From Thalia democratica (lineage: Eukaryota), in contig OZ241827.1 in assembly GCA_965202585.1 (NCBI GenBank), forward strand, positions 20,460,001 through 20,524,000: 64,000 nt of DNA, given 5' to 3'. Within the stretch, counting starts at the first letter, position 1. Every line of letters starts with the position of its first letter. Below are positions 5,377 through 38,827 of this stretch, one piece after another. The translations under genes and the position numbers were made by a program. The notes beneath the pieces are model-generated. The model saw only the letters and a program-made list of their open reading frames with translations. It did no database searches and was not told where the DNA came from.

Positions 5377-5800
5377 GTGCCAAGTATACTTTTAAAATGA
5401 GAATTAACTACTTTTAAAAAAATGAGTCAATTTAAGTGGAAAAATTTAACTTATTGCGCTGTATTTATAACTGTACTTATTTATCTGTATAAAAATTACT
5501 GAAGTTATAACACAAAATGTTGTATAAAAAAAATAAAAAAAATGTTTAAGAAAAAAAAAAATCTCAAAATTTTGTTGAAACTAAACGTTATTTAATCAAC
5601 ATAAAAATTATAAATAACGTGTACAATAACAGAATAACATTTGATTCATAGACTTTAAGTATTTATAAAAACTTGATAACCAACTGTAATCCAAAAACGT
5701 AATTAAAAAAAAAGGGTAATTTCTGACTCCTGTCACCCTCTAAAAGGATAATGACGCTTATTAGAGATACTTTATCATAGTTTCAAAAACAATAAAAAGT

Positions 5801-6025
5801 TTACAACTATCACAACATAGTAGTGAGTAGCTACAACTATCACATCACAGTAGTAAGGAGCTACAACTATCACATCACAGTAGTGAGGAGCTACAACTAT
5901 CACATCACAGTAGTGAGGAGCTACAACTATAACATCACAGTTGTTGGGAGCTACAACTATCACATCACAGTTGTGAGGAGTTTACAACTATCACTTCACA
6001 GTAGTGAGGAGTTTCAACTATGCAC
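5801..6025 (+). repeat. 30-bp minisatellite array (~7 units)
   Basis: Tandem tacaactatcacatcacagtagtgaggagc units. Confidence 0.95.
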
Positions 6026-8094: not shown

Positions 8095-8585
8095 AAAGTA
8101 CCTAATAACAAGAGCAAAAAATGCAAAAATTGTGCGTTATGCGGAAAATACAGTAAATATAAAAACATGATTGATGAGAATAACTACATAAAAACAGTTG
8201 AAAACAGAACAATAAACATAAAATCAAAATTAAACTGTAAAAGTTACGGGATATATTCTGCTCAGTGTACAAAATGCAAGGAGATTTATGTAGGACAGAC
8301 TAAAAACGGTTTTTACGTAAGATGGAATGCACACAGAAACAATTGGAAAAGTTCCAAAGAAATTTTAACTTTGTTTGTAAAGGAGACGAATCTGCATTAT
8401 TTAAACACTACTTTGAGAATCATCATAGTGATATTGAGAATATGGGATTGGATAATGCCTACAAGATAATGTTTTTAGAACAACCAGAATTTAAAAACTT
8501 GGACTACAAAGAAAGTTTATGGATAAAAAGTTTAAATGCAAAAATTAACGTAAATAAAACAGTTTATGAAGATTTAATAATTTAG
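8095..8585 (+). pseudogene. Penelope-like retroelement GIY-YIG endonuclease domain, 5'-truncated and frameshifted
   Basis: The frame of ORF 8167-8469 gives CKNCALC (8122-8142) then NCKSYGIYSAQCTKCKEIYVGQTKNGFYVRWNAHR, i.e. a Cys motif plus GIY...YVG...R..H. The C-terminal half (SALFKHY..H..LEQ..LDYKESLWIKSLNAKIN) continues in ORF 8322-8585, so there is a frameshift near 8350-8370. This Cys-GIY-YIG layout is characteristic of Penelope-like elements. No RT remains. Confidence 0.88.
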
Positions 8586-8844
8586 AACTTGTTATTTTAG
8601 GATGTTTAAGAAAAGAGCATTTTTGTACATTGTGTTTTGGCTTGTTTACTTGTATGCATTTATGAGTTGTTAGTTAGTAGAATCTTAGTTGTTTAAAAAA
8701 TTTTTGTATGAAATTAATTGTTTGATAATATAAAATGTTTATAAATTTATATAGCCTAAAAATTTAAGTTTTAACTTTTATTTAATTTTGTTTTCTTTAT
8801 AAATTAGTTACTATTAATTGTGTTTTATATTTTCAGCCGTTTAT

Positions 8845-8880
8845 CGCTTGATAAAGTTTTAATAAACGAAAGTACTAGCG
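8845..8880 (+). ncRNA. Minimal type I hammerhead ribozyme in the 3' region of the Penelope-like remnant
   Basis: Sequence cgc-ttgataa-a-gttt(taat)aaac-gaaa-gtact-a-gcg. Stem I CGC/GCG, core U3UGAUA8A (U3:A8 covariant of CUGANGA), stem II GUUU/AAAC, GAAA, palindromic stem III AGUACU, cleavage triplet CUA after 8877. It lies 260 bp downstream of the GIY-YIG stop, where PLE hammerheads are expected. Confidence 0.72.
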
Positions 8881-9451
8881 TGAATTCAAAAGCGTGTTAT
8901 TTGTTCATTTTTAAGACAGTGGAAGCAATATTGTACTCTTTACAATAATTTTGTTATATAATAAAATCAAGTATATTTTCCAAAAAAAAGACTAACTTTA
9001 ATATGTAGTAGGAGTGGAAAGATTTTATATTTTTAGACTGTGTTTTAACTGTACAAACTTTTTTGTATAAAAATAACTAAAGTTTTAACACAAAACAAGA
9101 CTTCAAACAATTGATCACAGTTGTCCAGCGTTTTTACAGAGTCTCTATTATCACGTCTAAGTTTTCTGCAAGTTTACAAAGTATACATAATCACATAGCA
9201 GTTTTTCACAACATTACAATGTCTAGAACTATAAGTGTTAAAGCTAAACTTATATTAATAAACAGAACAATTATAAAAAATAACTTGCTGTAAAAAACAA
9301 CAATTATTAATTTTTTTATGCCAGTCTGTTGAAAAAATGTAAACGAAAAGTTATTTAAAAAAGAGGTTAACTTTTGACTCCTGTCACCAAATAAATTTAT
9401 ATTGACGCTTTAAAAGAGATGCTTATCATAGTTTACAAAACATCAAATACT

Positions 9452-9718
9452 TTACAACTATCACATCACAGCTGTGACGAGCTAAAACTACTACATCACA
9501 GTAGTTAAGAGCAACAACTATCACAGTAGTAAAAAACTTACAACTATCACATCACAGTAGTGAATAGCTTTACAACTATCAAATCACAGTTGTGAGGAGC
9601 TACAACTATCACATCACAGTAGTGAGGAGATTTACAACTATAACATCACAGTAGTGACTAGTTTACAACTATAACATCACAGTAGTGAGGATTTTACAAC
9701 TATAACATCACAGTAGTT
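9452..9718 (+). repeat. 30/31-bp minisatellite array (~9 units)
   Basis: Tandem units read directly. Confidence 0.95.
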
Positions 9719-9892
9719 TTAAGACTTAAGAAATGAACATTTGAAGTAGCTCTATAAAAGACTCAGTACTTCCTTGAGTTGTCTTATGTTAATAAATGTA
9801 TCTCCTAAAATTTTAGACAGTAGATAAAAATAAGTTTGTAAATAAAAAAAAGACTCAGAAAAATTAAACCTTTTTTAATTAATAGAAAACAT

Positions 9893-10110
9893 ATTATTAT
9901 TATATTGTTTATTGTGCAATGTTGGACTCAGGCATCAAAACCTGAGCCACTTAAACAGGACACACAAAAAGAGAAAAAGAAAATAAACTTATATTCAAAA
10001 CTTTAAAATAAATTATATATATATATATACAAACATAATTTAAATGAAAACACAAAGTTAAACACAATATGATAAACAAATGAACTAAATTGAAAACAAT
10101 ATAAACAATA
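9893..10110 (-). mobile_element. 5'-truncated non-LTR retroelement (LINE/SINE-like) 3' end
   Basis: This ~220 bp is absent from the inverted sister copy (14930-14990 joins its flanks directly). The minus strand reads the hairpin ctcagg-ttttgatg-cctgag, then AATAAA and an (AAT)n tail. Boundaries are approximate and there is no exact TSD. Confidence 0.55.
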
Positions 10111-13100
10111 TATAAACAATAACTTGCTACAACAAAATAACAACTGCTTTCTGACTTTATTTCTTATAACGATCTAATGACCAACTGTATGGTAAAAAAG
10201 TTTAAAATAAAAAGATCAAATCCTAGCTACTGTCACCAACCAAAATGACGTAAACACTTTTTTTTGATCAAAGTTGTCCCAAACATTACGTAGTCTTCAA
10301 CTCACACATCACAGTTGCCTACAGTTATCTGCATCATTGTAGAGCTAGATCTATCTCATCATAATTTTTATTAACTTAAGAAATCAATCATTGACGCAGC
10401 TATATAAACTACTTAACACTTTCTTGAGTTGTCTAACGTTTTCACATGTATCTCTTTAATGTGGTTGATCTTGGGCGGTTTAAAAGTACCGTTTAATAAG
10501 TAAGACTCTCAGCCCTATTTTCAATTGTTTTCATCTTCGTTCGACAAGAAACTACAAACTTTTTTTTCGAACTCTTTTCTTCTAAAAATTTTATTAAACA
10601 CTTCATAAATTTTCTGACAATTTCCAATATATAGTTTTTACAACTATTACATCACAGTAGTCAGAAGTTTACAATTATCAAATCACAATAGTTTAAAAAT
10701 TTAAGAAGTAAACCTTTTATACATAGTGTATTTGCTTCAATAATTCAACTTCATAATTGAAAGTATCGTTTGAAAACCAAGACTCTCAGCCCTATTTTCC
10801 AATAATTTTTATTATGTGCGACAAGAAATAATAAGAATATGTTTTATCGATCTCTTTTCTTCTAATTTTTTTTAATTAAAAACTTCATAAATTTTCTTGC
10901 AATCTCCGAAATAGATAAAAAAAAAATTATAGTTTAATTATGTTAAAAAACTAAATTATAACTTAATAAAAAAATAAATTTGCTGTTAAGGAGTCAAATG
11001 CGAGGTGAAAAAAAAAACAAATGTTAAATCCTGTCACCAACCGAGAGGACTTTTAAGCTTTGAATGAAATGATCGATCATTGTTGTTCGCAACAGTACTA
11101 AGTCTACAACTATCTCATCATAGTTGTCTGTAACATTAAGGTTGAAATTGTTTTAAAGTTGAAGAAATCTATAAAATACTTTTTTTAGGTGCGTCATGTT
11201 TACTAATATATGCGGTCGATCTTAGCAAGTTTGAAACTACCGTGGAAATCAAAGAATTCCACTAATATTTTCTAATAACTTTCATCTTCGTGCCATAAGA
11301 AAAAATAAACTTATGCTTTATCGATTTTTTTTGTTCTATAATTTAACTAAACACTTAACAAATTTTCCGGAATTCTACACTATAAAGTTTAAAAAAAATC
11401 AAGTTGTAAAAACAGTTTAATTGGTATGGAAAACCTTAATTTATACTCAAATATAAACTCTAATCATAGTTAATTTTTTTATCAAAACTAAACGAAAATA
11501 CCAATTTTTCTTCATGCCGTCTTGAACATATAACCACTATCTGTATGATCAAAAGTTAAAATTTGAAAATTCTTCAAAATTTAGCATATGCAAGTTATTA
11601 AGCGAACTGTTTGGCCTACTACTTGGTGTTCTAGTAGGCCAAGCAGCGGCACATAAGTCATAACGTCACTAATACAAATTAACAAACGGTGACATAAAAA
11701 CAAGTATTAATAAAGAGACTAGTTAGCTTAACAAACATTCTTTGAGAAAAAGGGTTAGTGAAAACTACAAGTAAGTAAGTTCTTTATTATTACTTTATCA
11801 CTCTCCTTTAAGTTTCACATTCTCTGTGCTGATTTATTTTTGAATATAAAGAATCAAATTACTTAAAGGATAGATACAATAATTAATACAAGTTGACTAT
11901 ATATGTTCATTCCATAAAAAAAAAATAAAGAAAATCAACCTTTGACGCAACTTTATAAAATACTCAGAACTCTGTGAATTGTCTTACTTTACTTTTTTCC
12001 TAATAAATTAAATATCTTTAATTCTTGCAAAATTTTGTTAATAGATCTAAGTATGAATGTAAAACTATAAATAAAAACATGTGTCGATTAAAATGATAAT
12101 CTTACCATTATTAAACTGCATTTGTAAATGTATTTATGTTTTTATTACACTTACGATGGTTTTAACATTAAATGAGATATAAAACAATTATAAGTAAATA
12201 TGAGTTTATTACATAAGAAATAAAAAAAACTTAACAGTTAGGTTAAAACTAAACGTAAATCACTTAACACAAATACTATAAACAATATAAACAATTACTT
12301 CTTGTAACAAAATAACAACTGTTTCGTGTTCTTTTATATCCAATAATGACCTGATGACAAACTGTAGGGCGAATATTTAAAAGAAAAAAATTCACAACCA
12401 AAGACGCCGTATTCGCTTTGAAAGAGATGACTTAAAGTTGCCTGCAACACTACAAAGTCTCTAACTATCACATCACAAATGTTTGCAACTTTACAGAGTC
12501 TAAATCTTTTTAAACTATAATTTTTTGTAATATTAAAAGTTATACGAATTTTACATCGTAGTTGTTTTAACCTTTAAGAAATCAGTCTTTGTATCAACTT
12601 TATAAAATACTCAGAACTTTCAGGAGTTTTTTATCTTTACAAATGCATCTTTTAATACGACCGATGTTGGCAAAATTGAATGTATCTTCGGAAAGCCAAG
12701 TCTACCAGTAACAAATATTAATAGTTTTCATCTTCGAGCAACAAGAAATAACAAACTTATATATTTTTAAACTTTTTTCATCTAGAAACAAGTTTAAAGA
12801 GATACACATAAACCTATAATAGTTTATTTAAATTCGACGTCGTTTCGACTTTACCTAAGTCATTATCAAACATAAAACTGTATGTTATTTTAACTATAAT
12901 TAGTGCTAAAACTAGATATATTAGGTTAACAAACTAACACAATGTATAAATTTTTACAATACGGTAAAATACAACATTAATAATAATATTTGAGTAACTG
13001 ATCGTTTACAAAATTCTTAATGTGTTGGTAAAACCCGGTTTAGTTAATTGCTTGTTTAAAATTCGGCTATAACGTTTAATTATAACTGCTTCATTATCAA

Positions 13101-13947: not shown

Positions 13948-14278
13948 TTAACAACTATCACACCACAGTAATAAAGAGCTACAACTATCACATCACAGTA
14001 ATTAGGATACACAACTTTTAATCACAGTAGTGAGAAGCTACGACTATCACATCACAGTTGTGAGGAGTTCACAACTATCACATCACAGTAGTGAGGAGTT
14101 TACAACTATCACATTACAGTAGTAAAAAGTTTACAACTATCACATCACAGTAGTGAGGAGTTTACAACTATCGCATTACAGTAGTGAGGAGTTTACAACT
14201 ATCAAATCACAGTTGTGTGGAGTTTACAACTATCACATCACGTTAGTGAACAGTTTACAATTATCACAACACAGTTGT
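13948..14278 (+). repeat. 30/31-bp minisatellite array (~11 units)
   Basis: Tandem units, mostly the 31-bp gagtttacaa variant. Confidence 0.95.
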
Positions 14279-15127
14279 TGAAAGTTAAAAAAAATAAATT
14301 ATTGAAGCAAATACACTATATATAAAAGGTTTACTTCTTAAATTTTTAAACTATTGTGATGTAATAATTGTAAACTTCTGACTACTGTAATGTGATAGTT
14401 GTAAATTTCTGACTACTGTGATGTGATAGTTGTAAAAATTATATATTGGAAATTGTCAGAAAATTTATGAAGTATTTAATAAAATTTTTAGAAGAAAAGA
14501 GTTCGAAAAAAAAAGTTTGTAGTTTCTTGTCGCACGAAGATGAAAACAATTGAAATAGGGCTGAGAGTCTTACTTATTAAACGGTACTTTCAAGCCGGCC
14601 AAGATCAACCACCTTAAGGAGATACATGTGAAAACGTTAGACAACTCAAGAAAGTGTTAAGTAGTTTATATAGCTGCGTTAATGATTGATTTCTTAAATT
14701 AAAAAAAATTATGATGATCTAGCTCTATAATGATGCAGACAACTGTAGGCAACAGTGATGTGTGAGTTGAAGACTCCGTAATGTTTGGGACAACTTTGAT
14801 CAAAAAAAAGTGTTAACGTCATTTTGGTTGGTGACAGTAGCTAGGATGTGATCTTTTTATTTTAATTTTTTTTTACCATACAGTTGGTCTTTAGATCGTT
14901 ATAAAAAATAAAAGTCAGAAAGCAGTTGTTATTTTGTTGTAGCAATTCATTGTTTATAAGTTTTCTATTGCTTAAAATAGGTTTAATTTTTCTGAGTCTT
15001 TTTCTTATTTACTTAACTTATTTTTTTTTTAAATTTTAGGAAATACATTAATAAACATGAGACAACTCAAGGAAGTACTGAGTCTTTTATAGAGTTACTT
15101 CAAATTTTCATTTCTTAAGTCTTAAAA

Positions 15128-15458
15128 CAACTGTGATGTGATAGTTGTAAACTCCTCACAACTGTGATGTGATAGTTGTAAACTCCACACAACTGTGATT
15201 TGATAGTTGTAGCTTCTCACTACTGTGATGTTATAGTTGTAAACTCCTCACAACTGTGATGTGATAGTTGTAAACTCCACACAACTGTGATTTGATAGTT
15301 GTAAACTCCTCACTACTGTAATGTGATAGTTGTAAAGCTCCTCACTACTGTGATGTGATAGTTGTAAACTTCTTGCTACTGTGATGTGACAGTTGTAATT
15401 CCTTACTACTGTGATGTGATAGTTGTAGTTCCTCACTACTGTGATGTGGTAGTTGTAA
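15128..15458 (-). repeat. 30/31-bp minisatellite array (~11 units), reverse orientation
   Basis: Tandem ctgtgatgtgatagttgtaaactcctcacta units. Confidence 0.95.
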
Positions 15459-17461
15459 ATTATGTAATGTTTCGGAAGCTATGACAAAGCATCTCTTTTA
15501 AAGCGTCAATATCCTTTTGGTTGGTGACACAAGTCAAAAATTGCCTTATTTTCAAATAATTTTTTGCATTACAGCTCGAAACAAGTTGTTATAAACAAGT
15601 AAGGTACACGAATCAATTGTTATTTTTACCGCAAGGCTTGTTTTTAAGTTTTCTGTTGATTAAATTAGGTTTATTTTTTTTGAGTCTTTTTTTTATTGAC
15701 TAAAATTATTTTATTTATTTACTATTGTTTTAGGAGATACATATGTAAATATAAGACAACTCGAAAAAGTACTGAGTCTTATATAGAGTTGCTTCAAAGG
15801 TTTAAAAAAAAACAATTTTTTTAAATAATTTTGTATATAGTGTTCATTAATTACCTTATATATATGGTTTTAGCACTAATCTTGGTTAAAATAACATACA
15901 GTTTTATATTTGATAATGACTAATGTAAAGTTTAAACGCCGGCGCATTGAAAAAAACTTTTATAGGTTTATGTGTGTCTCTTTAAACTGATTTCTAGAAG
16001 ATAAGAATTCGAAAAAGTTCAAGTTTGTTATTTCTTGTTGCACGAAGTTGAAACGAATTGCTAAATATTACTAAGACTCTTGGCTTGTCGAATGTACATC
16101 CAAATTTACCAAGATCAACCGCATTTAAAAAATGCATATGTAAACATAAGAAAATTCTAGAAAGTTTTGAGTTGAGCCAAAGACTGATTTCTTAAAGTTC
16201 AAAACAACTACGACGTAAAATCTATATAATCCTTGACATTATGAAAACTATAATATTCGGACAGCTGTGGTTGATATTTGTATACTTCGTATTGTTGCCG
16301 TCAACTTTGATGTGATATTTGTTGACTTCGTATTGTTGCAGTCAACTTTGATGTGATAGATGTAGACTATTTAATAATGCTGGACAAACGTGATCAATAG
16401 TTTTAAATTATATTTTATGTTAAAACTTTATTAGTTTTTATACAAAAAAGTGTATACAGTTAGAAGTACAGTCTAGTAGTATAAGTTCGTTTTAATTCTA
16501 CTGACATATATTGAAGGTAGTTATTTCCTTTATTTAAATATACTTGGTTTTGTTAAAGTGATCTACCAGATCCACTAATTAGGATACAGCTGAATTTGTT
16601 TTTATTATTCAAGTTTTGGCCGGATCCAGATTTAATATTTTAAGCTTTATGAAGTGTTAAAAGGGAACAAACTTATAAAAATTAAGTTATTTTGATACCA
16701 CTAGTTTAGTAAAAAAGTGCTTAATCATTTATCTTATTAAAAAACAACTAAATGTTGTACTTAAATTATTTTATTTTGAACTCTAACAAAGTAAAAATTT
16801 AATGTCGTAAAAAAAAATCTCTACGAAATCTTATTTTAGATTTTTAGATTTGATTTCAGGCTACTTGTACGATTGAACTTGAATTTTGTATCCCGTATGG
16901 TTTAAAATAAATGAAATTACATATGAAAATTGTTGATAAATAACAAACTTAATGTCGATAAACGTATTTTAAATTAAACATAAAAAAAAAAACTTTAATT
17001 TTATTAATACATTTAACTAAATTTCTTTTATTAAACAAGCTAAGGTTTTTTTTTATTGGACGTTTGAAAACTTCGTTTGAGGTAAATTTAAATTTAGCTA
17101 TGTATTTATCAGACTAACTTAAGTTTTTTCTGTTTAGTCATTGATGTATCACAAGAATAACAAGACTTGTTTTTATTTATATTCATATCATATTTTGTGT
17201 TAGTAGTTTTTATACAGATAAATAAGTACAGTTATAAATACAGCTCGATAACTTAAACCTTTCTACTTAAATTCTCACATTTTTAATGAAAATTAATTAT
17301 AAACTAACTTAAAAGTATACTTTATACACTATTAACAAGTTTTTGCATTTTGTAAAAACACTGAATAAAGGATATACACTTATTAACTTAAGACAACTAA
17401 AGAAAGTGTAAAGTCATATATAGAGTTTTTTCAAAGTTTTATTACTTAATTTTTAAAACAA

Positions 17462-24129: not shown

Positions 24130-24345
24130 ATTTTGATGTGATAATTGTAGCTCTTAACTACTGTGATAGTTGTAAACTCTTCACTTACTGTGAAGTGATA
24201 GTTGTAAAATCCTAACTACTGTGACGTGATAGTTGTAGATCCTCACTACTGTAATGTGATAGTAGTAGCTCCTCATTTTTTTAATATGATGGTATTAGCT
24301 CCTCATTTTTTTAATGTGATAGTAGTAGCTCCTCACAACTGTAGT
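24130..24345 (-). repeat. Last minisatellite array of the macro-satellite region
   Basis: Reverse-orientation units, ending at a short TIR-like remnant cctccccacgctacgcctccg. Confidence 0.9.
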
Positions 24346-26154
24346 GCACCTCCCCACGCTACGCCTCCGATTAATAATAAAATTAGAACTTACAAACAAA
24401 GAAAATACTGAAGTTTTGAGAAACTAAAAATATTACTGAAAACAAAATATTAACCGTATATACATTTATTTGTCGTTTTATCATAATTACAAAACAAAGT
24501 CTTTATATAAATAAAAATTTCTAATAAGGTAAAAAATTGTTATGCACAACTAGATTTTTGTTTAAAATCAATATTTTACAAGTCGGCTGCTATTCCTTTT
24601 TAGTTCCACATTGTTATTATTGTTTATTGAACGATAAAAAAGCGCTCAAAGTATTTTTTCTAAGGACCTTGTTTACAAAAAAAACCTTTCGGCTATTGAG
24701 TCGTACACCACATGTTTATACAATTTCTTACGGGCTTTTACGCATAATTATTTTATCATCTAAATATTCAAATCCTTAGTAATAAAAAAATCAATAAAAG
24801 ATTAGTTTAAACACTAACTGATTTAATTACAATAAATGAAGTAATTTGTTGATAAATAACTTATTAAATCCTATCAGTTTGTTGTAGTTTGTCTCAGTGA
24901 GATATAATTATTCAATTTTTTATATTCAAACACTTTATCTTTATATTAAACAAAAAACAAATTTCACGTTAAACAACTAAAAACAAAACTTTTTAAAAAC
25001 AACTTTAACAAAATCTTATCAAAAAAAATCATGATATTTCGTAATATAAATTATTAGGAATATTGAAAAAAAATAAAAAAGTCATAATGAAAACATTCTG
25101 CAGTCCATCTTAAAATTCGTGAAAAACCAAATATGTAAATTCTACTACTTTATATTTTTGTAAGTTTCTAGCACAAACGCAAAAAGTGTTTAAAATAATT
25201 TTAAACCTAGTTAACTATGTTTAATAATTTCAGGCTTTATGCTAAAAAATCAAAAAAAAATCAAAACATTTTGCGTAAGTTATACGTTCTTCCTTTGTTT
25301 TTAAATTGAAATGTTTATTTTTGCATTTAATTTTGTTATTTGCGGGTAATAAAAAGCCAAAACAAAATATTTTTGTTAAAAGTAAACATCGTAAAAATAC
25401 TAGGTGATTTGGCAAAAATTGTAGCGTCCTAAAAAGGGACTATTAGAATAACGACTTAATTTTAAGAAAAAAACATGTAATAAATATTCTTGAAGTAATA
25501 TGTCCTGTCAAAGTACTATAATTACATCAATGTTATTTACAAACACGTGAAACAATTAATTCGAAAGCAATTAAAAGATAAATAATAAAAGTAAACGAAG
25601 TTTTTGATAAAAGTCAGTGCATCAAAAATCAAACAAAAGTTTAATAATTAACTGATGTTATTAAACGTTGAAATACCAGTACATAAAATACTTTGGTCAT
25701 GCACAAAAGTTTATTTGATCAGTTCGTTTGACAGTATTAAAAAAAAAATTAAATGTGGTTTTAGATGGTACTTTAGTTAAATTAATTAAAGACTAGTAGA
25801 TTTGAGCTTTAAAATTAGATAGTGTCGAGTTTAGTATTTATCTAACAATGCATTTAAGTCGTCATGAAAGATAATTTTGTGTTGAGACTTTTTCTACTAA
25901 CTTTCTTATGCTTTTCCAAGTTAAATAATTAAAAAATAAGTTATCAAATAAGTTATCAAATAAGTTACAAATATGTAAGTATTTTATTAAAACATAAATT
26001 ACTGCTCTTAAAGATTTTGAAATAAGAATTGTATAACAAACTTATGAAACTAAGGTTTATCATTATGTATTTTATTTGATAGTCTTTAAAGAATATTTTT
26101 TACAGAACTTTAAACTTGAGTAGTTTTTTAAAAATTGCTCAATAAAGCTTCAAA

Positions 26155-29100
26155 ATGGGCAAAAAAGAAGATGGTTAGTTACTGTTTTTAATATTAAGGT
26201 TAATTTCTAAAACTCTGAACCAAATAAACAGACAACTCTTCGGTCGAAAAGAGAAGTATGGAAAGTATGGATATAGAAAGTAAGCTTTAATTTTTAATTT
26301 TTACATAAATAAGTTATTTTACTCTTTACGACCGTTAAAAAAGCTACTTATCTTTAAATTTTTCTATATTGGATTTAATTTATATAAAAAAATAACTAAG
26401 AACTTAAGTTTAACGTTTACCGTAGTTTTAATTTTCACAATTTAAGTTAGCTTTCGTTTGATATTATCAGTGAACTTTAATAAGAAATACTTTGATAGTA
26501 ATCCATTGTTTAAGGTCATACAATAATACTTTTTTATGAATATATTTAAAATTACTCAAAGCTTACCTGAAGTTTTACCCTAGTTTTGCTTTTATTTATT
26601 AGAAGCATTTATTTAGTATTTTGAAAGCTTAATTTAAATAGATAATACTATGATACTATAATTTCTAGATAAAGTAAACTTTACTTCTTGATCTTATATG
26701 TTTTTAAAGCTTCAGTTAATAAAGAGTTGTCTAAATATTTTATTTGAAAAAGCAAAGATTTAACAAATTGATTTATTTAACAGGCAAAAAGAAAAAAGAG
26801 GTAAGACCGTTCTTTTATTTTTTACGAACACTAATTGTCTAAGACTAAATGTAATATTTAATTAGTAAAAAACTCACAGCAAACTAAGAGCTTATTGCAC
26901 TAACTGACTTTCATAAAAAGTTTTATTCTTACGTTTTGACCAAAGAAGAAAAACGATATTGAAATAAACACTTTTTTTAAGTATTGTAACTTTGTATATC
27001 TAACAAAAAAGAGTCGTACGGTCGTACAACGTTTAAGAAAAAGACAGTTTAAAACATACAAGACTTAGTATGTTTGCCTATATCCTAGTTGGTTAAAATA
27101 TTTCAAAAGTTGACAAAGCGCGACAGTAAAATCAGTGGATTAAACAAAAAAAATGCGCTTAACGACCAGGTTCAGATGTTTTCAACAGGCATAGAAAAAA
27201 CAATTGCTTTTTAGAAATAAATTAGTCCTACTGTTTCGAAATATATCCTAAATTCAAAAGATAAACTCCTAAATTCCAACATGAAGTTTATAAAAAAAAA
27301 TTAAAAACAGTTTACAGAAGTTAAAAGTAAAAATACTTTGACATATAAAGATAAACTACAACTCTTAATAAAAGTAAAAAGTTTAATAATAGGAAACAAA
27401 TTTTCTTTACCTTCCCTTATTTCCGCATTACAATTTTAAATACTTGAAATTTCTTTTATTTGCTAATTCCATAGCTTTATATTGCAATTATGTACATATT
27501 TTTATTTATTTTTTAATAATTTAGTTTATAAAATAACTAATTAAGATCAAGTGTTAAATATAAAACCGGTAAAAAAGCTGCCTAACAAAAACTAAGAACT
27601 TTATTTACTATAAACATAAATACTTTACAATTTAGATAAGTATGTGTCTTAGTACATTTTAAATTTTGTATTACAATTTAGCTTCTATATATACTTTAAA
27701 ATAAAAATAGTATGTAAAAATTAAAAACGTGACATGATGCTTTTAAGCGGTTTTGTTAACATTTTACTTAGAAAACTTGATGTTTTTAATCTAGCTTTAA
27801 CAAAACTTGCTACAAAACGTATTGATAAACAAACAAAACTCTTCCTGTAAACATTATTGCGACCGACTTGTTTAACACTAAACCACTAGCTTTTACTGCC
27901 GACCGTTTAACACTTTTTCTGAAAAGCACTAAGCACCGCGTTAGCAACAAAGCATGTCACGTGACTTATCGCTTGAGTGATTTCAAGATTGCCCACGCGC
28001 TATGCCAGCACTTCATTCTTTCCGCTCTTGCACAACGTTTCAGCGTTTAAAAACTTTTGCGCGTTTTGTTTTCATATCATGAAACTCTCATGAAACTCTT
28101 GGTCGGCTCAAATGCAGCTGGAAAACTTGGAAGACAGGCCGCTGCTTGAAACGCCGAGGCGTGATAAAAGCAGAAAGCGCAGGAGCAAAAAGGTTTTGTT
28201 TGAGCAATAGAGGTTTTGTTTCGTGAAATTATTTTGTTTTTGTTTTGCAGGGGTTTCCACTGCAAGTTGGCTTCATTCTGGGAAATGAGTTTTGCGAAAG
28301 ATACTCGTACTATGGAATGAGAAGTTGGTTTAAAACTAAACAATAAGTTTTAGCTGTAAATTAAAATAAAATACTGCTGTTTTTTTTAACTGTTTGTTGT
28401 TTTTATTCACAAACTGAGTTTTGAAGGTTTTTTGAGTTAAAATACTAATTTTCAAGAGTAAATTAAACATCTTGAAACATTTCTTTAAACCTTTAGTGTA
28501 CAACAAAATATATTATTTAAACATCTTTAATAAAAACTTGTTTTGGTGTACTTATTTAGTATAACCTTAAAGTAAAAAAAAAAACTTTTAAACTTTGGTT
28601 GTTTATTGTTTAATATTTAAAACTTGAAAAAATCGTTTGAAATGTTTGTTAAGTTAAACTAAATATTTGTAAATAAACTGACATTTTAAGTCTGTTTGAA
28701 ACAGAAATAAAAACTTTGCAAATGACTTTTGTTTAACACAAATAATTTAATGTAATGTTTAATTCACCCACAAAAACATTATCAAGAATGGATTAAGAAT
28801 AAAAATATGATAACAGTTTTAAAATTACGCAGTTATTGTAAATAAAAAGCAGTTTGAAAGTTTTTTTAGTGTTCAGTCTGAACAAACACCGGATAAATGT
28901 TTTAAACGTTATTTTGTTACACATAGAACAATACTTAATACCTTTGTTGATGATTGATGGCTTTTTTCTCTGTACAGCTCAAAAATGTCTACTTGTATTT
29001 GTCAAAGTTTTCTTATAGTCACTGGTGTATAGTTTAATCTAAACAAAGTTTTCTGAAGACCTTTAACAGTGAAAAAACACTCAGCAATACTATTTTTACA

Positions 29101-32100
29101 TGAATCTTTGAATGAAATCACAACAATACTAATTATTTTTAGCATAACAGTTCTAAAACAAAGAGTTTATTAAAAAAAAAAATATTTTTCTAATTATTCA
29201 GTATTGTCGAAACTTTAATTTTTCAAGTGTAACTAAAAAAATTAAAACTCCGAATTAAGTATTCTACCAACATCCTCTCAACATTCAAAAGTGATGGTGT
29301 TTGAGCTTACCTAATTTTATCACAACTGTTTTGCTATATATAGTACAAATTTCAATAGATTTATTTATTTCCATAGCTGGTTTGCTATAGCTATTGACTG
29401 AACAATAAAAATAACTATTTTTTTAAGTCTTTATTTTATTAAACTTTAATTTTTTCAATCGTGTTTAACTATACCTAAACAATTTATGTTTAAAAGTTTA
29501 CCAACATCCTTTAAAAACTAATCGTTGTTCAAACTTACTAATTTTTTTCAAGACCGTTCTGATAGCAAAATATTCATTTCAATTTTTTCTGCAAAATGAA
29601 AAAAAATATTTTAAAAGCTGCTTTACTGTAACTGTCGACTAAATTGTTTTCTCAATTATTCAATTCAAACAGCCGTCCTCGTCTTGTACCTTTCGAGTGA
29701 TCTGATTGGCTGGGACGAGAACACCGCCACCGCCGTCTACCACGCCTTCACCGTCCTCGCCTACCTCTTTCCGCTGTTGGGCGCCATCATCGCCGATTCG
29801 TCGTGGGGTAAATACTGGTCGGTTGACTTTTGTTTAAATGATTTGTGGGTCTTCGTATTCGCAGTTAGTAAAATTGTTAATGAAAGAATTATTGTTTAGA
29901 TGGTAGAATTTAAGATAAAGTATTACTAGTATTACAAACTTTATTATTTATTGGTTATAAGCTTTTTAGTTGAAAACAGTCTAATTTCTATCTTTAAAAA
30001 TTTCGCTGAGATAATATGCTGGTAGTCTTGAAGAATCGGATAGTTTGTTATAGTTTGAAAATTAATAAAAAAAGGGTTGAAAAGTCATTGAAAAAAAACT
30101 GTTTCATCTCGTAAAATCAAATACTTGAAAGAAGATATTTCGTTTGTTAACATTTAAAAAATTCTTATTACAGTAGAATTCTAAATGAATTCTGATTTTA
30201 TAGTTTTTTGAACAAATAAATTTGGTTTGTTGTAAGATCTACTTATTAAAACCTAACCAACACATTAGGCTCTGAAGCTGTTGTAAAACTTTTTAACAGC
30301 AAAGTATTGAAAGATTAGCCTACGATTTAAAGTTAATAAGCAATATTATTTGTTTTGATTTTTTGAAAACAAATACAAAGATCTCAACTTCTAGAGGAGA
30401 ACTGATATAGTTTATTCTTTCAAGACTTTAATTAGCAAACTATGTATCCGTCAAAGACCTCGTCAGTACTTATATAAAATGTTAACCAAATAGAACAATA
30501 AGCAACACTTAACACTTATTTACAACCGTTTGGTTAACCCATCAAATAACACTTTTCGAAACTATTACAATTTACGTAACTGCTTTATAAATGTCATATA
30601 TTTCGGCAGGACTATATTCTGGCTGTCTATCGTGTACGCGATTGGTTCAGGCATAAACATGATGAGTGCAATCAAACCAATAGGAGGAGACAATCTTGTT
30701 GTGCACGCGTGAGTAAAGGAAAATATTTTTATTAAAACTTTGCTATTGATATACATTATTTTTTTGTCGATTCGAAAAATGAAGCGAAAAATGATACCTG
30801 TTAAACTTTACCTGTAAAAATCAAGTTATTTTAACTTTTTAAGCATTTTGAAAATAGATAGTTTAGCTTGTAAGTCTTTGTCCTAAATATAAACGTTAAT
30901 AACTATGAATGAACTTAAAATGAAAATTAATTTAAAAAGTGCGCTGGCCTCGGTGGGGTTGTTTGTAATTGCGTTTGGAACGGGAGGAATTAAACCGTGC
31001 GTGTCCGCGTTCGGTGGTGATCAGTTCTCTGAAGATCAGGTAAGTAAAATATAATTGAGTAAAATGTGATAGTTTCAATTGTAAAACTTAAAATATTTGA
31101 GCTCAAACAAGCTCGAAAAGTTTTACCTGATAGTAAGATATTCGTGAAAAAACACCTGAAAAAATTTATTTTTTTACCGATTTTAAACTTTTTTCAAGCA
31201 CTAAAATTTAATTTATGTTTTAGTAAATTTTTAAAGTTTAGTTTTGACATGTTTTGTAATAGTAAGTCGTTTGAAATTTAATTATTTTCTTAGGATGACT
31301 ATAGAAAAAGTTTCTTTTCTCTCTTCTATTTTGCCATCAACGCCGGAAGTTTGGTTTCCACTTTTGTTTCGCCTCTAATCAGATGTAAGTTACAATACAA
31401 GTTATATATTGTAATAATAGTATTATATATAACCAACTAATCTTAAAAAAACAGTTATTAGTACCTTGTAAATGTTTTTAAATGCAAGGCTACAAGCTGC
31501 AAATTATAAAAAAATCTAAAGTGTAGTATAAAAAGAAAACATTTTTTCAGCAGTAATGACTTTTGTACATTGTAAAATGTTCCTAAATTATAAAACCACC
31601 ATATTTTAGTAAATATAGAAGAAATAAATTTTTCAAAAACATTCTTAAACACTTAAACACATTTTACGAAATAAGGATGACTTTATTTACAGATAAATTT
31701 CTTTGTAATCATTTTTATTTTTTAACTTAAGTTCTAGAACAAGTAGCTTTATTTAACATAAACTGTTTTATTATACTTTTTTTTGTATTTACCAAACATT
31801 ATTTATTCCAAAATATGCCAAAACAAACTAACAACTTTTACTTAACGTTTTACTAGCATCCTTTGAAAAACAAATATTCTTTAAATTGGCACAACTTTAT
31901 CACAGCTGTACAAACTACTTTTATTTTATACAGTGCTGTACTTATTTTCTTGTCTTACTTTAAAATTAGCTGAAACGCAACTTTTAGGATTAAACATTTC
32001 ATTTTACAGCCGAGGTTTCTTGCTTCGGTGATGAGTGCTATGCCCTTGCATTCGGTATTCCCACAGCTCTGATGGTTGTTGCTATTTGTAAGTTTTAACA

Positions 32101-35100
32101 ATTACATGTTTTTTGATCTGTCTTATTCGGTTTAACTTATTCATCTTTGTTTTAAATTGAATGTAACCAAAAACTATCAAACAAATTTTAATGTATAACA
32201 ACTGCCTGCAACTAAAAAGCTACTGAGCTGCTAAGGCGTCTAACAATTTAATCTTAATAACTTGCTGTAACGTTTACAACCAATTTACTTCGCACAGTGC
32301 TGTTTGCTATTGGCACGCCTTACTACAAGAGAGTTGAGCCTGAAGGAAACGTTTTCGTGGAAGTGTCAAGAGTCATTGGGGTTTGTTAATACAAAAACGC
32401 ATTTGATGTTGATATGTTAAACAAAAAATCGGCTGTAAACAGTCAAAAATGCTAACTTTTAAAACATATCATACTAAAACAAGATACCTAAAAATCATCT
32501 TGTTGTATATTTTCACAGTTTCTAACCTTGATAATTTGAATACATGTATTTTTATCAGTACGCACTGAAAGTGAGAGGAAAAGTTCCTTCCAAAGAAAGA
32601 AATAAGGAGCATTGGCTCGATTATGCCGAGGATGGTACTAGAGAAAGAGTAAGTTGATAATAGCATAAATTTAAAAAAATTCAACTTAGCAAGTTTCTTA
32701 TCAAAACTGGCCTGTATCTAACAATTTGATATTTTTAACTTTTTGCTAAAACTTGTTTAAGTTGTTAAGATTTGAGTAAGAAAAAATCAACAAGCTAAAT
32801 TCTTCTTAAATTAAGTAAAAATCCCAAATAGCATAAGTACAAAACGTAACGGCAATAAAATTTGTAAAGGCTATTAAAGTTCAGCTTCAGTTTTGCTTAA
32901 AATCCCTTACTAATGTGCTTGATATTAAGTTTTACTCATTCTTCTTTGTATTCAATCTTATCAACAGTTATTTCTACGAAAACCCTTTTTTACTGTTTCG
33001 ACTACGATTTTAGCTTTGGCTTAAGTTTATGATAACTACTGATTACCAACAAAACTTGATGGTTTCTTAACTCCTCCTTTTTTTCGATCTTTATCAAAAT
33101 CGAACAAAGTTACGGCTTGGGTTTACTCTAACGTTTTCGACAGGACCAGATCATCAGGGACATCAAGTACGTGTTCAACGTGCTCGTCATCTACATCCCC
33201 CTCCCCCTCTTCTGGTCTCTGTTCGACCAGCAGGGATCCAGGTGGACCCTGCAGGCCGTCAGGATGAACGGAGTCATTGTGAGTGAGCAGTGTTTTAATT
33301 GTTGTTGAAATGATAAGCTGGATGTAAGTACTTAAAGAGAGTTTTTAAACACAGTTTGGCTGGTTTCCTTAAAACAAAATTGAGAAAGCTGTGAATGCTT
33401 TTCGTTTCAGGATAAGCTGAAACATTTTATCACTATATTATTTTTTGGGCAAATATTAAAAATTGACTTAACTTGACTAAAATACTTTTTATTTTAACGA
33501 ACTAGTGTCATTAACTTTAAAGAAGTAAATACATTTTTAAAAAACAACCAAAAAGTGTTCACTCACCTTATTTAGCTCTTATATGTTCGAATTTTCTTAA
33601 TTGTTATATAAAACAAAATTATAATTTGAAATTTTATGCAGCGGGTTCGTGCGCATAGTTTATTCATTGATTAGCTAGAAAATCATAACCTGAAAAAAAC
33701 GCTTTTCTTATCAAGTCAAACGAATCAAGACGTACTAACATCCTAATTAAAAGGTCAGAAAACAAATATTTACCAACAGGGAGACGTGTTGATCCTTCCC
33801 GATCAAATCCAACTTTGCAACCCTCTGATGATCATTGCGCTCATTCCCCTGTTCGAAGTCACTCTCTACCGGTGGCTCCGCGCCAAAAACATCAACTTCT
33901 CGTAAATATGTTTTTATTTGTTTTCAAAATTTTTTTGTGATATTCAAATTTTGTTTTTGTCTTAGATGGTTTCGAGTTTGTCTGTTTCGTTTAAACTTTT
34001 AGCTGTTTTCCTGCAAAACGTACGTATTTCAAACTTTGTACAGTCATATTTTGCAACTTCATAAGAACATTTTAACAGACCACTGAAAAGAATGGGACTT
34101 GGCATGTGGCTGGCCGGTTTAGCTTTTGTCGTGGCTGCCATCATACAAACAATGATCAACGTAAGTTTTTGTATTTATAAATATGTGAAAGCTTTATCGC
34201 ACTAAAACTAAGATTTTTTTAAAGAGTTTAGACTTCATAATGAATATGCAATAATGCGCAGTTATGGTATTTTGATACAAGCAAAATTGTACGGGAAAAA
34301 GTTATTCAAAATACTAGACTGTTTTGAAAAATTGCTACAGTTGTTTTAATCATTAAGTTTGAACTAATAATATATGTACAAAATTAAAAACAGTATAAGG
34401 CAAACGTATCAGACGTTTGACACATCATTAAGATTGGCTAATAGATCTCAATAGTCTATTGAGAAAATGCAGTGATCATTCTCTTATTTTAAAGATGTCT
34501 GAGTTCGTAACAAAATTGACTTTTTTCATATGAAAAACATACAACTGATTAACACCCACCTTATTTTCACAACAACGCCGTTTGTCTTTTTCAAAACTAT
34601 CAAATTCGCATCATCTTCAAAAGATCAGCGCCATTTTTTCCAAGTACAAAACTCAATTCAAATATTTTCGTTCAGGAAAACCTGACGCTGACGCCGAGGA
34701 AGGGAGAAACCACGTTGAGAGTTCTGAACGGAGTCGACCTTAATTGCAACCTGAAAATGGGGGGAAGCATCTACAACTGGAACACTGAGATGCCCATGGT
34801 CATGTTCATGAAGGTTAGTTGTCACTTGCACTAGTTTTGAAGTGTGAGGTTTTATAACATGCTAATAGTAAACTTACACGTGTGAGCTATTTGTTTTTCA
34901 AAAGCTGTTTGAGTAAAAAGTTGGGTTCAACAATTTTTTTGTTATGTTAGCTTAATTTTTTTAAACTGTTTTGACAAGCAGGCTGTAAAGTCTTCAAAAT
35001 GTTATGTTTTGAAATGCTGCTTTTTAGTTTATTATAAAAACTGTCTATGACTTTACTGGCTTAAAAATTTAAAGTCGGTTACAATCAACACCATAGACAA

Positions 35101-38100
35101 ATTAACTTTTCAGTTATTTACAGCAAACAAACTTAGATAAAACAAATAGGCGTCCAATACCACTGAAGATATGATAGATGAAGGAAGATACACAATAGAA
35201 GCGTCGTGCCCCGGCTACACAACATTCGAAGCAGAAATCGACTTGCTCGGTGAGAAAGCATACGATGCCGTCATGTATAGAGACGGAAGCAGCATAGCAG
35301 GAAAAGTGGTAAGCTATTTTATTACAATTTTATGACAGCACTGTGTAGTTTTTCAAAAGGGTAACTAGTATTTTTTTTCTTTTAGCTGCTAGTTTCGTGC
35401 ATTTTGTTGTCATTTACAAGTGTCGAAACATTTAAAAATACGCCTAATTTTGTATTTTCCGCATATTTATAAGTTCGGTTATGAAAACGCTTATTATGGT
35501 ACACTGGAATGAAATTTTATAGCTAGAAAGCTAGTTTTGATGAAAGTAACACATAATTACTTAAAGTTTATTTAAATTAAAAAAAACACAAGTCTTTTAA
35601 AACTGGTGTGGTTTTCTACTTTATACTTACTAAAGACCGACTTTTATAGATTTTGTTTAATAACTGAACACTAAAATACGGTTGAAGTTAATAAATCCTA
35701 ATACTCCTATAAACTGTAACAGGATTATACGTAGTTTTTTATGAGGTATAAACTATTTTTTAGTCTTAATCAACTTAAACTACTTTTTAATAAGTCGATC
35801 AAGTTATTATTATAAAAAAAAATATTTTTTAAGTTTTTAAAACACGTTAAGTTTCTATATCATTTCGTGAAATAAATAATAACCGTAATAGTTAGTCGTA
35901 AATTAGTGTTTTAAATCTGTTGTATATAGTAAAATGATAAATTAAACTTTACAGTAGTCTGTTTACCAGAATAAAAAAATATTTACTTGAAAAGTTCTGC
36001 AAAGTATTCAAAAGTATACTAGTTTATACTTTTTTTTACTTATGGTGCTAACAATTTTTTAATTATGAAGACTTTTTGTTTAGGTTGAACGTAATGTGAA
36101 AAAGTCGCAAAGTGGAAACGCAATTTTCAGGTAACAAGATTTTTCTATTAATAAGCATCTATAAATTTACAGGCAAAGTTTAACCTCAAACTTCTTAACT
36201 TTTGTAGATTCATAGTCGTAACATGAATATGAAAGAACTTAAAAAGTTAAAATAAATTCATTATTGAAAAAATAATTTTATGAAAACTAACACAAAAAAT
36301 TCTTCAATTAAAAGAAAAACTAATTTATTTTCAGTGTAGCGAATGCGTACAACGAAAATATAGAAGTTTCGATGGTCATCAAAGGAAAGAATGACGTGAA
36401 AATGGATTTGATGCCGGGAATGAAGTACGAATTCGAAGAACTCAAACAAACCGATGGACCGTTAGTTGATTGTTTTTAGTCAATGAACAAGAACTTTTAT
36501 AGCCTATATCTTACTTTTAATCAAAAAATATTGAATTTTTAGTCGCAAAACGTGTTTTATAACTTAAAATTTTTACTTATATTAAAATTGATGTAGATGA
36601 TAATTATATTTAATAAAATTGGTTAAAAATGATCTAAATATATGTTTCGACGAATAACAATAATAGTATTTATCCTCCAACTATTAAGGCTTAAAATGTA
36701 ATAGTACGAAAAACAACCTAACTTTTTCTCTAATATACAAGTTTTCTATAACTTCAGGATTTAATGAAAATTTACATAAAACATTGTTTAAAAAATGCTA
36801 ATATTTTAAATAAGATAAGTATACGTTAAAACTAGTTATTTGTATAGTTTACATATTAAAATAAGCAAAAAAAAGTCTATAGCTTTTTTAAATGAAGTAC
36901 ATGTGTTTCGATTTCAACCAAACCACTAACAGCTTATTTACTTTAGATAAGAGCTTAAGAGTTGTTTAGATAAATTCAAACTATTATTTCAATTTAAAGT
37001 ATTTTTTTCTGTAACTTAATTATTGTATTAGGTTCACACTGAACGTGAAAGCAGGAAGTGATGAATATACAGATGAAATAAATCCGTTGACCGGTGCTGA
37101 CTACACTTACCTAGTGGCACCCGGAGAAGTTAGTTTTGATTTTTAACTACAGTTTGTTTATGTGTTAAAAACTTAGTTGATGTTTTAATATTTGCTGAGG
37201 TTTGTAAAAATTTTATTCAAGTGCAATAAGTGTTGCGTTAAAGGTAACGTCATATAGTAAAAATGTAAATATATATTTTAATATTAAGTTTTGTTTATCT
37301 AAAAAAAGAAACTAATGCGTTAAAAAGTTCAAGTTTTATTAATCATGATCCAAAAAAAAAAGCATTTTGAGTAGTGTCCATCGTAAAAAAATAAGTTTGA
37401 ATCTTTTTAAATTTTTAATCTTCAAAACATAGTTTTTATGAAAGTTGCCTTATAATCAATTCTGAAAACTATTAGCAAATAGTTTATTTTTGTTGAAAAA
37501 TTATAAAGTTATGATAACCAACATAATGTTTATGTACGAAAGAAAAGATATTTTTTCTTTAGTTGTTTTATTATTAATCAAACTTTTATTACTACAAATT
37601 TTTATAGAATCACGAAAACTTCAAAGACATTTACGAAAATGACATAAGTATATTTTGGATGGTGCCCCAGTATTTCATTATCACTTTAGGGGAAGTTTTT
37701 CTGAGCGTTACCGGTCTCGAATTTGCTTATTCACAAGTAAGTTTTTTAAAATACTTTACATAAAGAAAACACACTGTGTATTGTTTTAATTGCATGTATA
37801 ATGATTTAAATTCATTATCAAGTCTGATTCTAAACTCTAGTTAATAAAAATAAAAACTGAAATATATATTTAAAAACTGTTTTTAAAACATAAATACTGA
37901 TTCACCTAAAACTGCAAGACTTTAAACCTAAATAGTATATACATTTATAACTTTATAAGTCATTGTTCAATTTAGTAACAAACTTAAACTGTTATTCCGT
38001 TTTAAATTAACTTTTGTTTCTTAAAAAAAAATCAAAAAGCAATCCCCTAAAACATTCAACACGTACAATATAATACTTATTATATTCATTCCCAACTTTT

Positions 38101-38827
38101 CAGGCCCCACAAAGCATGAAGTCGGTGCTGCAGTCTTTCTGGCTTCTCACCGTCTCCATCGGAAACATCATTGTCCTGATTGTGGCCGAACTCAGTCTCA
38201 TTCCTAACCAGGTACTTTTTGCTTGCTAACAAATGCTATTTTTTTTGTATTTTTACATAAAATTTTGTACAATTGTAAAATAAACGCAGCTAAAAAGTCC
38301 TAGACTTAAGCATCAAATGCTTGACTATCAGTCTGAGTTAGTACAAGGTAGTTTTTACTACTTAGTTTTAGTTTTTACAATCATCTTTTAACTAAGGGTC
38401 TACTAGTGTATATTTAAATGTTATATTAAAGTAAAATCTTTTAATATAGTTACATTTTACATTTGTCTTGGTAATAAACGTTTTAAACCGACTATGTATA
38501 ACACAAGCTTGTACGTCTACTTGTTGTAAAAGTTAATAAACCATCCGACAAACATTTTTCCTCATACAAATCACAATTGTGACGTCACAGGCTGACGAGT
38601 ACTACCTGTTCGCGGGTTTGATCGCCTTCGCCGCCCTCGTCTTCCTGTGGCTGGCCACCAGGTACAAGTACGTCGACGAGAACGAGTTCCGAAGGGACTA
38701 CTCCGACTCGTCGGACGATGACGTATCATCGGTGACGTCATCCAACATGAGCGAGAAGCCCCAAGAGAAGAAGGAGAAGAAGAAGGCGTACGACAACCAG
38801 GCCTTCGTCAAGAACACCCAGCTGTGA
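26155..38827 (+). CDS. SLC15A1: Proton-coupled oligopeptide transporter, PEPT1/PEPT2 type (SLC15/POT family), ~740 aa; invertebrate co-orthologue of SLC15A1/2
   Basis: Manual GT-AG model with all phases consistent. Shared exons: 28251-28323, 29673-29817, 30610-30708, 30940-31039, 31294-31384, 32010-32087, 32298-32380, 32559-32648, 33144-33278, 33780-33901, 34079-34160, 34676-34813, 35150-35308, 36084-36130, 36335-36460, 37032-37128, 37608-37736, 38104-38211, 38591-38827 (2139 nt = 712 aa + stop). Motifs: NEFCERYSYYGMR (ExxERxxYY), [77 protein letters not shown]. There is also a large TM9-TM10 extracellular domain (34676-37128). The candidate distal 5' exons 26155-26173, 26232-26279 and 26784-26800 give MGKKEDDNSSVEKRSMESMDIESKKKKE; these are less certain than the body. 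Confidence 0.95.
27956..27965. promoter_or_regulatory. Perfect CLEAR element (GTCACGTGAC; TFEB/MiTF-TFE E-box) in a CpG-rich island inside SLC15 intron 3
   Basis: Exact palindromic 10-mer within a locally GC/CpG-rich stretch (~27860-28200), 147 bp upstream of the ATG at 28112. An RFX-like half-site, gttagcaac, is at 27940-27948. Confidence 0.75.
28112..28192 (+). CDS. Candidate alternative first coding exon of the SLC15 gene: MQLENLEDRPLLETPRRDKSRKRRSKK
   Basis: ATG at 28112, then 27 open codons and the donor AAG|gttttg (28193). A 58-nt intron leads to the acceptor ttttgcag|28251 in phase 0, in frame with GFPLQVGFILGNEFCER. Read-through of the intron hits TAG. It encodes the [DE]xxxL[LI] motif EDRPLL. 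Confidence 0.72.

Follow-up and report, generated by a model that had tools for sequence, protein, structure and literature searches.

We analysed a 64,000-nucleotide stretch of Thalia democratica DNA (assembly GCA_965202585.1, contig OZ241827.1, positions 20,460,001 to 20,524,000), referred to here as the window, and all positions given without a locus name are those of the window. The plus strand carries a gene which, judged from its sequence, is a tunicate PEPT1/2-type SLC15 proton-coupled peptide transporter gene. Two sets of first coding exons, termed distal and proximal, both join exon 2 at 28251, and the two encoded proteins are identical except for the first ~27 amino acids. The proximal tail contains an acidic dileucine motif, [DE]xxxL[LI], of the kind that is read by sorting adaptors. 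This alternative-first-exon switch is real and is conserved among tunicates.

A PEPT1/2-type gene with two sets of first exons

The shared SLC15A1/2-type body extends from 28251 to the stop codon at 38825-38827 (28251-38827, + strand) and comprises, after the first shared exon, ~19 further exons that include the luminal/extracellular domain, as delineated by tblastn with the protein P0001 and by the list of open reading frames (ORFs). P0001 (738 aa) was found by a search with exon 3, over which it is identical to the window, and tblastn placed all of its exons at 28.2-38.8 kb. Homologues of P0001 include marine metatranscriptome proteins (87-100% identity), followed by ascidian proteins named 'solute carrier family 15 member 1/2-like' from Phallusia, Clavelina, Ciona and Styela (52-57%); vertebrate SLC15A2 and SLC15A1 share 40-44% identity with it. 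An orthologue of the proximal isoform, P0274, matches PTR2 (PF00854) with an E-value of 3.4e-109 and 366 bits (Pfam cut-off 27) and aligns with the solved PepT2 and PepT1 in one unbroken stretch (residues 19-707, ~1e-160), with weaker matches to SLC15A4/A3 (1e-30 to 1e-35). The first shared exon (exon 2; 28251-28323, +) reads GFPLQVGFILGNEFCERYSYYGMR, the signature of transmembrane helix 1 (TM1) in proton-coupled peptide transporters, and its ExxER(F/Y)xYY motif lies in NEFCERYSYYGMR (NEFCERYSYYG). Shared exon 3 (29673-29818, +), supported by an RNA contig and by tblastn, encodes TM2-3, and the exons at 34.6-37.1 kb encode the large TM9-TM10 loop domain.

The proximal set is a single coding exon of 27 codons, MQLENLEDRPLLETPRRDKSRKRRSKK (28112-28192, +), which is supported by the sequence, by a spliced RNA contig and by the orthologous N-termini of P0274 and P0273. 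A first-pass annotation of this DNA had proposed that an ATG at 28112, 147 bp past an E-box, opens this exon (MQLENLEDRPLLETPRR...), and that a 58-nt GT-AG intron leads from it in frame into the shared exon at 28251. The sequence agrees on both points: the intron occupies 28193-28250 (+; GT at 28193, AG at 28249-50) and is skipped in RNA. The peptide also contains the predicted EDRPLL, encoded at 28130-28147 (+). These residues, 7-12 of the protein, match the [DE]xxxL[LI] consensus and stand ~17 residues before TM1, which begins at ~residue 30, farther than the ~6 residues from the membrane that such a signal needs; the tail is probably cytosolic, given the proton-coupled oligopeptide transporter topology of the solved PepT1/2 structures.

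Four public runs cover the stretch, three genomic (X1-X3) and one of RNA (X4). Across the introns, the genomic runs stay flat at a single-contig depth of 86-111. In X4, a contig of 2237 nt (depth 72) lies on 28098-28190, 28249-28323 and 29673-29818 with zero mismatches. Its junctions are 28192^28251, the one that the first-pass annotation had suggested looking for, and 28323^29673; the 2-nt offset at the first of them is the AG/AG ambiguity of 28192^28251. The proximal exon is thus expressed and the 58-nt intron is removed. Depth in X4 is zero over 26000-27199 and below 0.3 over 27200-27999, which makes the dileucine isoform the assembled form in the single available RNA run; the stretch with the distal exons yielded no contig there, and contigs show presence, not absence. 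Contigs of related taxa that encode P0274 and P0273 (L002 and L003) have 5' untranslated regions (UTRs) of 89 and 104 nt, which align back to ~28023 and ~27988-27990 (alignment A1). With the X4 contig start at 28098, they place the proximal 5' UTR at 27988-28111 (+). The 5' ends of the three contigs are ragged (27988-28098) and have no acceptor in common.

The distal set consists of three exons, and the placement of the proximal exon inside intron 3, downstream of a donor at 26800, was correct. Exon D1 (26106-26173, +) has its ATG at 26155 (MGKKED.) and a coding part of 26155-26173 (ATG...G, followed by GT); D2 (26232-26279, +; DNSSVEKRSMESMDIE.) was located by tblastn with P0001 and in the sequence; and D3 (26784-26800, +;.S-KKKKE) is a 17-nt micro-exon with its donor GT at 26801, which matches the N-terminus of P0001 and P0269. 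Together they encode the tail MGKKEDDNSS...KKKKE, MGKKEDDNSSVEKRSMESMDIESKKKKE, in which no sorting motif was found. P0001 starts with MGKKEDDNSSVEKRSIESMDVESKKKKE followed by GFPLQV, and the tail encoded by the window differs from it by two substitutions. The possibility that the proximal exon is an ordinary first exon and that the upstream exons are imaginary is ruled out, as P0001-type transcripts match all three distal exons. N-myristoylation of the distal MG... head was also considered and rejected: a charged residue follows the Gly, contrary to the consensus, and the Clavelina tail has no Gly.

One PEPT1/2-type gene has two sets of first exons, of which only one carries [DE]xxxL[LI], and transcripts of both kinds occur in the window species or its relatives. 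The proximal class comprises the X4 contig, L002 and L003, with the proteins P0274 (MQLENLENKPLLETPK...) and P0273 (MQLENYEHRPLLETPK...); the distal class comprises the contigs L004 and L005, and the distal isoform is represented by P0001, P0151-54, P0269 and P0157. P0274 begins with MQLENLENKPLLETPKRDKSRTKRRRSKK, followed by GFPLQV, and its body equals that of P0001 except for a few residues; both isoforms therefore appear to come from one taxon. P0273 begins with MQLENYEHRPLLETPKHDKTKRKSRKRRQKK, again followed by GFPLQV, and belongs to a taxon that is ~87% identical. Plankton metatranscriptomes yielded more assemblies of the distal form, with at least seven contigs against two of the proximal form.

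The same pair is present in ascidians. RefSeq lists for Ciona intestinalis an isoform X1 with MLNDEEYELEPLLLSDQ... (YELEPLLLSD) and an isoform X3 with MGATKDEKGSSDDVSQMEEVKPAK (MGATKDEK...), and for Clavelina lepadiformis an isoform X1 with ...NEDDVELSPLIAGDES... (VELSPLIAGD) and an isoform X2 with MSDKKANNEKEDERNNISEMEEIKPKK (MSDKK...); the Phallusia tail reads ...KEGEPLLKAD.... Ciona (locus L006) and Clavelina (locus L001) have one and the same exon order: distal exons, dileucine exon, common exon. The first-pass annotation was not aware of a description of such a dileucine isoform. Both N-termini are in fact already in RefSeq, but no paper interpreting them was found: the literature search returned none that joins Ciona with SLC15A2 or peptide transporters, and none that deals with a dileucine motif in any protein of PEPT1/2 type.

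The dileucine tail and its predicted sorting

In an alignment of eight dileucine-type tails (A3), the conserved columns are M1, E7, P10, L11 and L/I12, together with an Asp a few residues downstream and a Lys that closes the tail. Apart from the Met, E, P, L and L/I alone are invariant over the range that runs from thaliacean-like taxa to Ciona, Phallusia and Clavelina, in tails that otherwise diverge. Between E and P the two positions read DR, NK or HR, and in L003 both Leu codons have changed synonymously (CTG>CTT, CTT>TTA). The EDRPLL of the window, for which conservation in relatives had been proposed as a check, is accordingly kept across tunicates as E-x-x-P-L-[LI]. Distal-type tails are homologous among themselves. 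None of 84 non-tunicate (mostly vertebrate) SLC15A1/2 N-tails of similar length contains [DE]xxxL[LI], which is present in 4 of 9 named tunicate proteins, in all three of the nearest named orthologues and in 2 of 30 assorted representatives. Taken together, the isoform pair, the invariance of E-x-x-P-L-[LI] and the empty control set make isoform-specific, adaptor-dependent sorting a well-supported prediction.

These observations bear first on the possibility that the two 5' ends represent only two transcriptional programmes, of tissue or stage, with equivalent tails and an incidental dileucine. In favour of this, alternative first exons occur commonly, each tail is short and charged and has a basic cluster after it, and the excess of distal contigs in plankton, with the proximal form alone in X4, fits differential expression. 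It is nevertheless very unlikely that the tails are equivalent, given that the motif supplies the sole invariant non-Met residues of the dileucine tails, that its Leu codons have been substituted synonymously and that it is absent from the non-tunicate tails.

A cytosolic E-x-x-P-L-L near the membrane is a classical ligand of the adaptor protein (AP) complexes AP-1, AP-2 and AP-3, and residence in the lysosome is the leading reading of what the motif would confer. We consider it reasonably probable that the gene has two mutually exclusive 5' ends, of which the dileucine head would direct the protein to the endolysosome and the distal head to the cell surface. In this mechanism, the distal transcript contributes, through its three tiny coding exons, a tail lacking a sorting motif, and the proximal transcript would start inside intron 3, at ~27990-28023, from a GC-rich island with one E-box. 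The clathrin adaptors AP-1/2/3 would read the cytosolic E-x-x-P-L-L and route the dileucine isoform into the endolysosomal system. The topology of the body would be unchanged, with the large loop domain facing the lumen, and the acidic lumen would drive di- and tripeptides out into the cytosol. By default, the distal isoform would remain at the cell surface. The two transcripts, their junctions and the deep conservation of both tails and of the motif are observed; adaptor binding, the lysosomal destination and any role of the E-box are inferred.

Several points weigh against this assignment. The localisation, adaptor binding and transport of the tunicate isoforms are predicted. The RNA evidence is one run, X4, and tissue or condition specificity is outside its scope; the positions of the proximal transcription start sites derive from the ends of assembled contigs rather than from cap-based data. 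The E-box is single and not factor-specific, and in the Ciona locus L006 no CACGTG or TCATGTG was found over 4900-13000, a span that begins ~3 kb upstream of the dileucine exon (at 8001) and ends 5 kb downstream. At the level of the protein, [DE]xxxL[LI] can also stand for basolateral sorting or endocytic cycling in place of residence in the lysosome, and in TPC1 the loss of the N-terminal dileucine through an alternative promoter does not abolish endolysosomal localisation (PMC4386455).

The first of these protein-level points can be extended to a reading of its own, in which the dileucine tail is a signal for polarity or endocytosis: the proximal isoform would be basolateral (AP-1B type) or cycled by AP-2, and the distal isoform apical and stable. 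The conservation of the motif fits this equally, and it has precedent, in that [DE]xxxL[LI] mediates AP-1-dependent polarised sorting (PMC4294670) and interacts with AP-1 and AP-2 (PMC2730553). We regard it as doubtful, since an N-terminal E-x-x-P-L-L on transporters of the major facilitator superfamily (SLC15A4/A3, GLUT8, MFSD1) typically goes with an endolysosomal steady state (PMC9169117, PMC10990142, PMC2730553).

The window gene resembles SLC15A1/A2 (PEPT1/PEPT2) in its full-length match, PTR2 domain, TM1 ExxER motif and large TM9-TM10 loop domain; unlike those genes, it and its ascidian orthologues add a second first exon with the motif that the 84 non-tunicate tails lack. PEPT1/2 are regarded as plasma-membrane proteins, and the exit of peptides from the lysosome has only recently been assigned to carriers, namely MFSD1 and SLC15A3/4. 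With SLC15A4/A3 (PHT1/PHT2), the proximal isoform shares an N-terminal cytosolic dileucine of the same position and type. Those, however, are separate and distant genes (~1e-30) without the large loop domain, whereas in the window gene the choice of first exon adds the motif to a PEPT1/2-type body. In SLC15A4 the N-terminal dileucine confers AP-3-dependent endolysosomal targeting (PMC9169117; for SLC15A3/A4 and MFSD1, see PMC10990142).

GLUT8 (SLC2A8) and MFSD1 are likewise transporters of the major facilitator superfamily with an N-terminal E-x-x-x-L-L, which is sufficient or required for intracellular or lysosomal sorting and whose mutation to AA shifts the protein to the plasma membrane (PMC2730553, PMC10990142). 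Their motif is constitutive, in contrast to one that is switched by first-exon choice. Switching itself has parallels in other families. TPC1A and TPC1B are separated by an intronic alternative promoter, and the N-terminus of TPC1B is without the dileucine (PMC4386455); an alternative last exon takes cystinosin, as cystinosin-LKG, out of the lysosome and into the plasma membrane (PMC4858208), by the same logic as that proposed here. The principle that alternative terminal exons add or remove a sorting motif is therefore already known for other carriers and channels (PMC4386455, PMC4858208). The tunicate gene differs from these two in family and in that each of its tails is encoded in full by alternative exons, which are conserved throughout the subphylum; in TPC1, moreover, the effect on localisation is only partial.

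A switchable dileucine head on a PEPT1/2-type protein in the sister group of vertebrates would be a case of compartment choice by promoter or first exon within SLC15, and it bears on how the family's surface and lysosomal branches divided their roles. Ciona already has the annotated isoform pair, and tagged constructs and reporters are routinely electroporated in that animal.

The GC-rich island and its E-box

The putative proximal promoter, the proximal exon and the mini-intron lie in a single-copy island (27851-28301), recognised by peaks in composition and by the flat depth of X1-X3. Its GC content is 42-45%, against a window background of ~25%. The earlier description as CpG-rich was overstated, as the observed/expected ratio of CpG is 1.11 against 0.89 for the whole window; it is mainly by GC content that the island stands out. 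A bidirectional promoter or a transposon origin of the island was considered and rejected, with no convincing minus-strand ORF or RNA and with single-copy DNA depth.

Within the island, the palindromic E-box GTCACGTGAC (27956-27965) lies upstream of all observed transcript 5' ends; it is 25-60 bp upstream of the mapped ends and is contained in no transcript. Its type is that of the CLEAR (Coordinated Lysosomal Expression and Regulation) element, and also that of USF and CLOCK-BMAL1 sites. The perfect CLEAR 10-mer of the first-pass annotation is confirmed, and even when one mismatch is allowed it is the sole copy in the window. Given base or dinucleotide composition, the exact 10-mer would be expected 0.0055-0.007 times in 64 kb, of the same order as the ~0.004 estimated previously, and ~0.0003 times within the local 481 bp. 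The bare CACGTG core is found four times in the window against 2.4-3.5 expected. We take the E-box to be a real basic helix-loop-helix (bHLH)-Zip site.

No variants of the E-box were present in the three DNA runs, which are ~99% identical to the window, so this invariance carries little weight. Relative to the window, X1-X3 show a cluster of single-nucleotide polymorphisms (SNPs) and two indels (27779, +15 nt; 27792, -6 nt; 27814-27933; 28001-28097). In this SNP-rich promoter, the 67 bp that hold the E-box (27934-28000) are free of SNPs, as is the coding exon. The probability of zero SNPs in the E-box block is ~0.08, which is suggestive but not significant, and the block was for this reason not used as evidence. 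A minus-strand GATAAG core (27966-27972) adjoins the E-box (GTCACGTGACTTATCG) and is a candidate gut-type GATA site.

Control of the proximal promoter by TFEB/Mitf, as proposed in the first-pass annotation, would follow from reading GTCACGTGAC as a CLEAR element; we judge it unlikely. The fuller model, in which a CLEAR promoter driven by the single tunicate Mitf would make the dileucine isoform a starvation-inducible lysosomal peptide exporter in place of SLC15A3/4, is quite unlikely. The site is the published CLEAR consensus (PMC7195473), an exact match near transcript 5' ends as in promoters of TFEB/TFE3/MITF targets, and it co-occurs with an independent sorting signal at the protein level; Ciona has one Mitf, orthologous to MITF/TFE3/TFEB (PMC7693978). 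It differs from such promoters in being single, in being unconserved in Ciona and in being equally a USF or CLOCK-BMAL1-type E-box. The palindrome also suits Myc/Max, GTCACGTGAC is among the E-boxes bound by BMAL1 in mouse liver (PMC10182026), and ~10 group-B bHLH genes of Ciona bind CACGTG; CACGTG binders of Ciona besides Mitf include Usf, Myc, Max, Mlx, Mad, Mnt, Srebp and AP4 (PMC7693978).

The conservation of CLEAR in relatives that this model had anticipated does not hold near the Ciona dileucine exon and is ambiguous in Clavelina. There, CCACGTGAC (10193) and the M-box TCATGTGA (10252), 60 bp apart, do follow distal exon 1 and precede the dileucine exon, but they are just past the former and 1.45 kb from the latter. 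A scan of JGI metagenome contigs for genomic copies of the 5' UTR or exon from relatives found none. Were the CLEAR model true, TCACGTGA would be expected to be enriched at the promoters of lysosomal genes in this genome. The most far-reaching version, again quite improbable, is that across Tunicata, over hundreds of millions of years, one PEPT1/2-type gene would yield through first-exon choice both a surface importer and an endolysosomal exporter, with the promoter wired to MiT/TFE factors (CLEAR) in this lineage at least. One two-headed gene would then cover a task that vertebrates divide between PEPT1/2 and PHT1/2.

Other features of the locus

The proximal 5' UTR contains an upstream ORF of 19 codons (28090-28149, +), which starts at an ATG at -22 and runs across the main ATG in a different frame. 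The context of this upstream ATG is weak; the ATG and the surrounding TCATGAAAC are kept in the two related taxa (L002 and L003), and the ORF could be a translational control element.

The distal transcript contigs L004 and L005, from a relative, both stop at the AG of ttttttacAG, immediately before AACTTT (window 26104/26105). The distal 5' boundary is thus a splice acceptor, and the distal promoter is located elsewhere than at the first coding exon. Such a boundary would be accounted for either by spliced-leader trans-splicing, a common process in tunicates, or by an additional exon upstream.

The C-terminal tail common to both isoforms (38579-38827) contains YKYV, a YxxPhi-like motif directly after TM12, and an acidic serine cluster, SDSSDDDVSSVTSS. 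As further candidate sorting signals, both might alter the outcome of the N-terminal switch.

The neighbours of the gene are alike in Ciona (L006) and Clavelina (L001): an Nsp1_C nucleoporin gene comes before it and tandem PTR2 paralogues come after it. One of these paralogues, P0175 of Clavelina, also begins with a dileucine-type tail, EKTYLL.

Much of the window upstream of the gene is filled by tandem ORF-like repeats, VVAPHYCDVIVV / SLQLSHHSSEE, in several frames and on both strands; they lie at ~1600-1850, 5780-6030, 14130-14280, 15130-15500 and 24210-24410. They look like a satellite or transposon-derived array. A very high-copy repeat lies at 24600-24799, where the summed contig depth in the DNA runs reaches 1.6-2.3e5 against ~90-110 for single-copy sequence.

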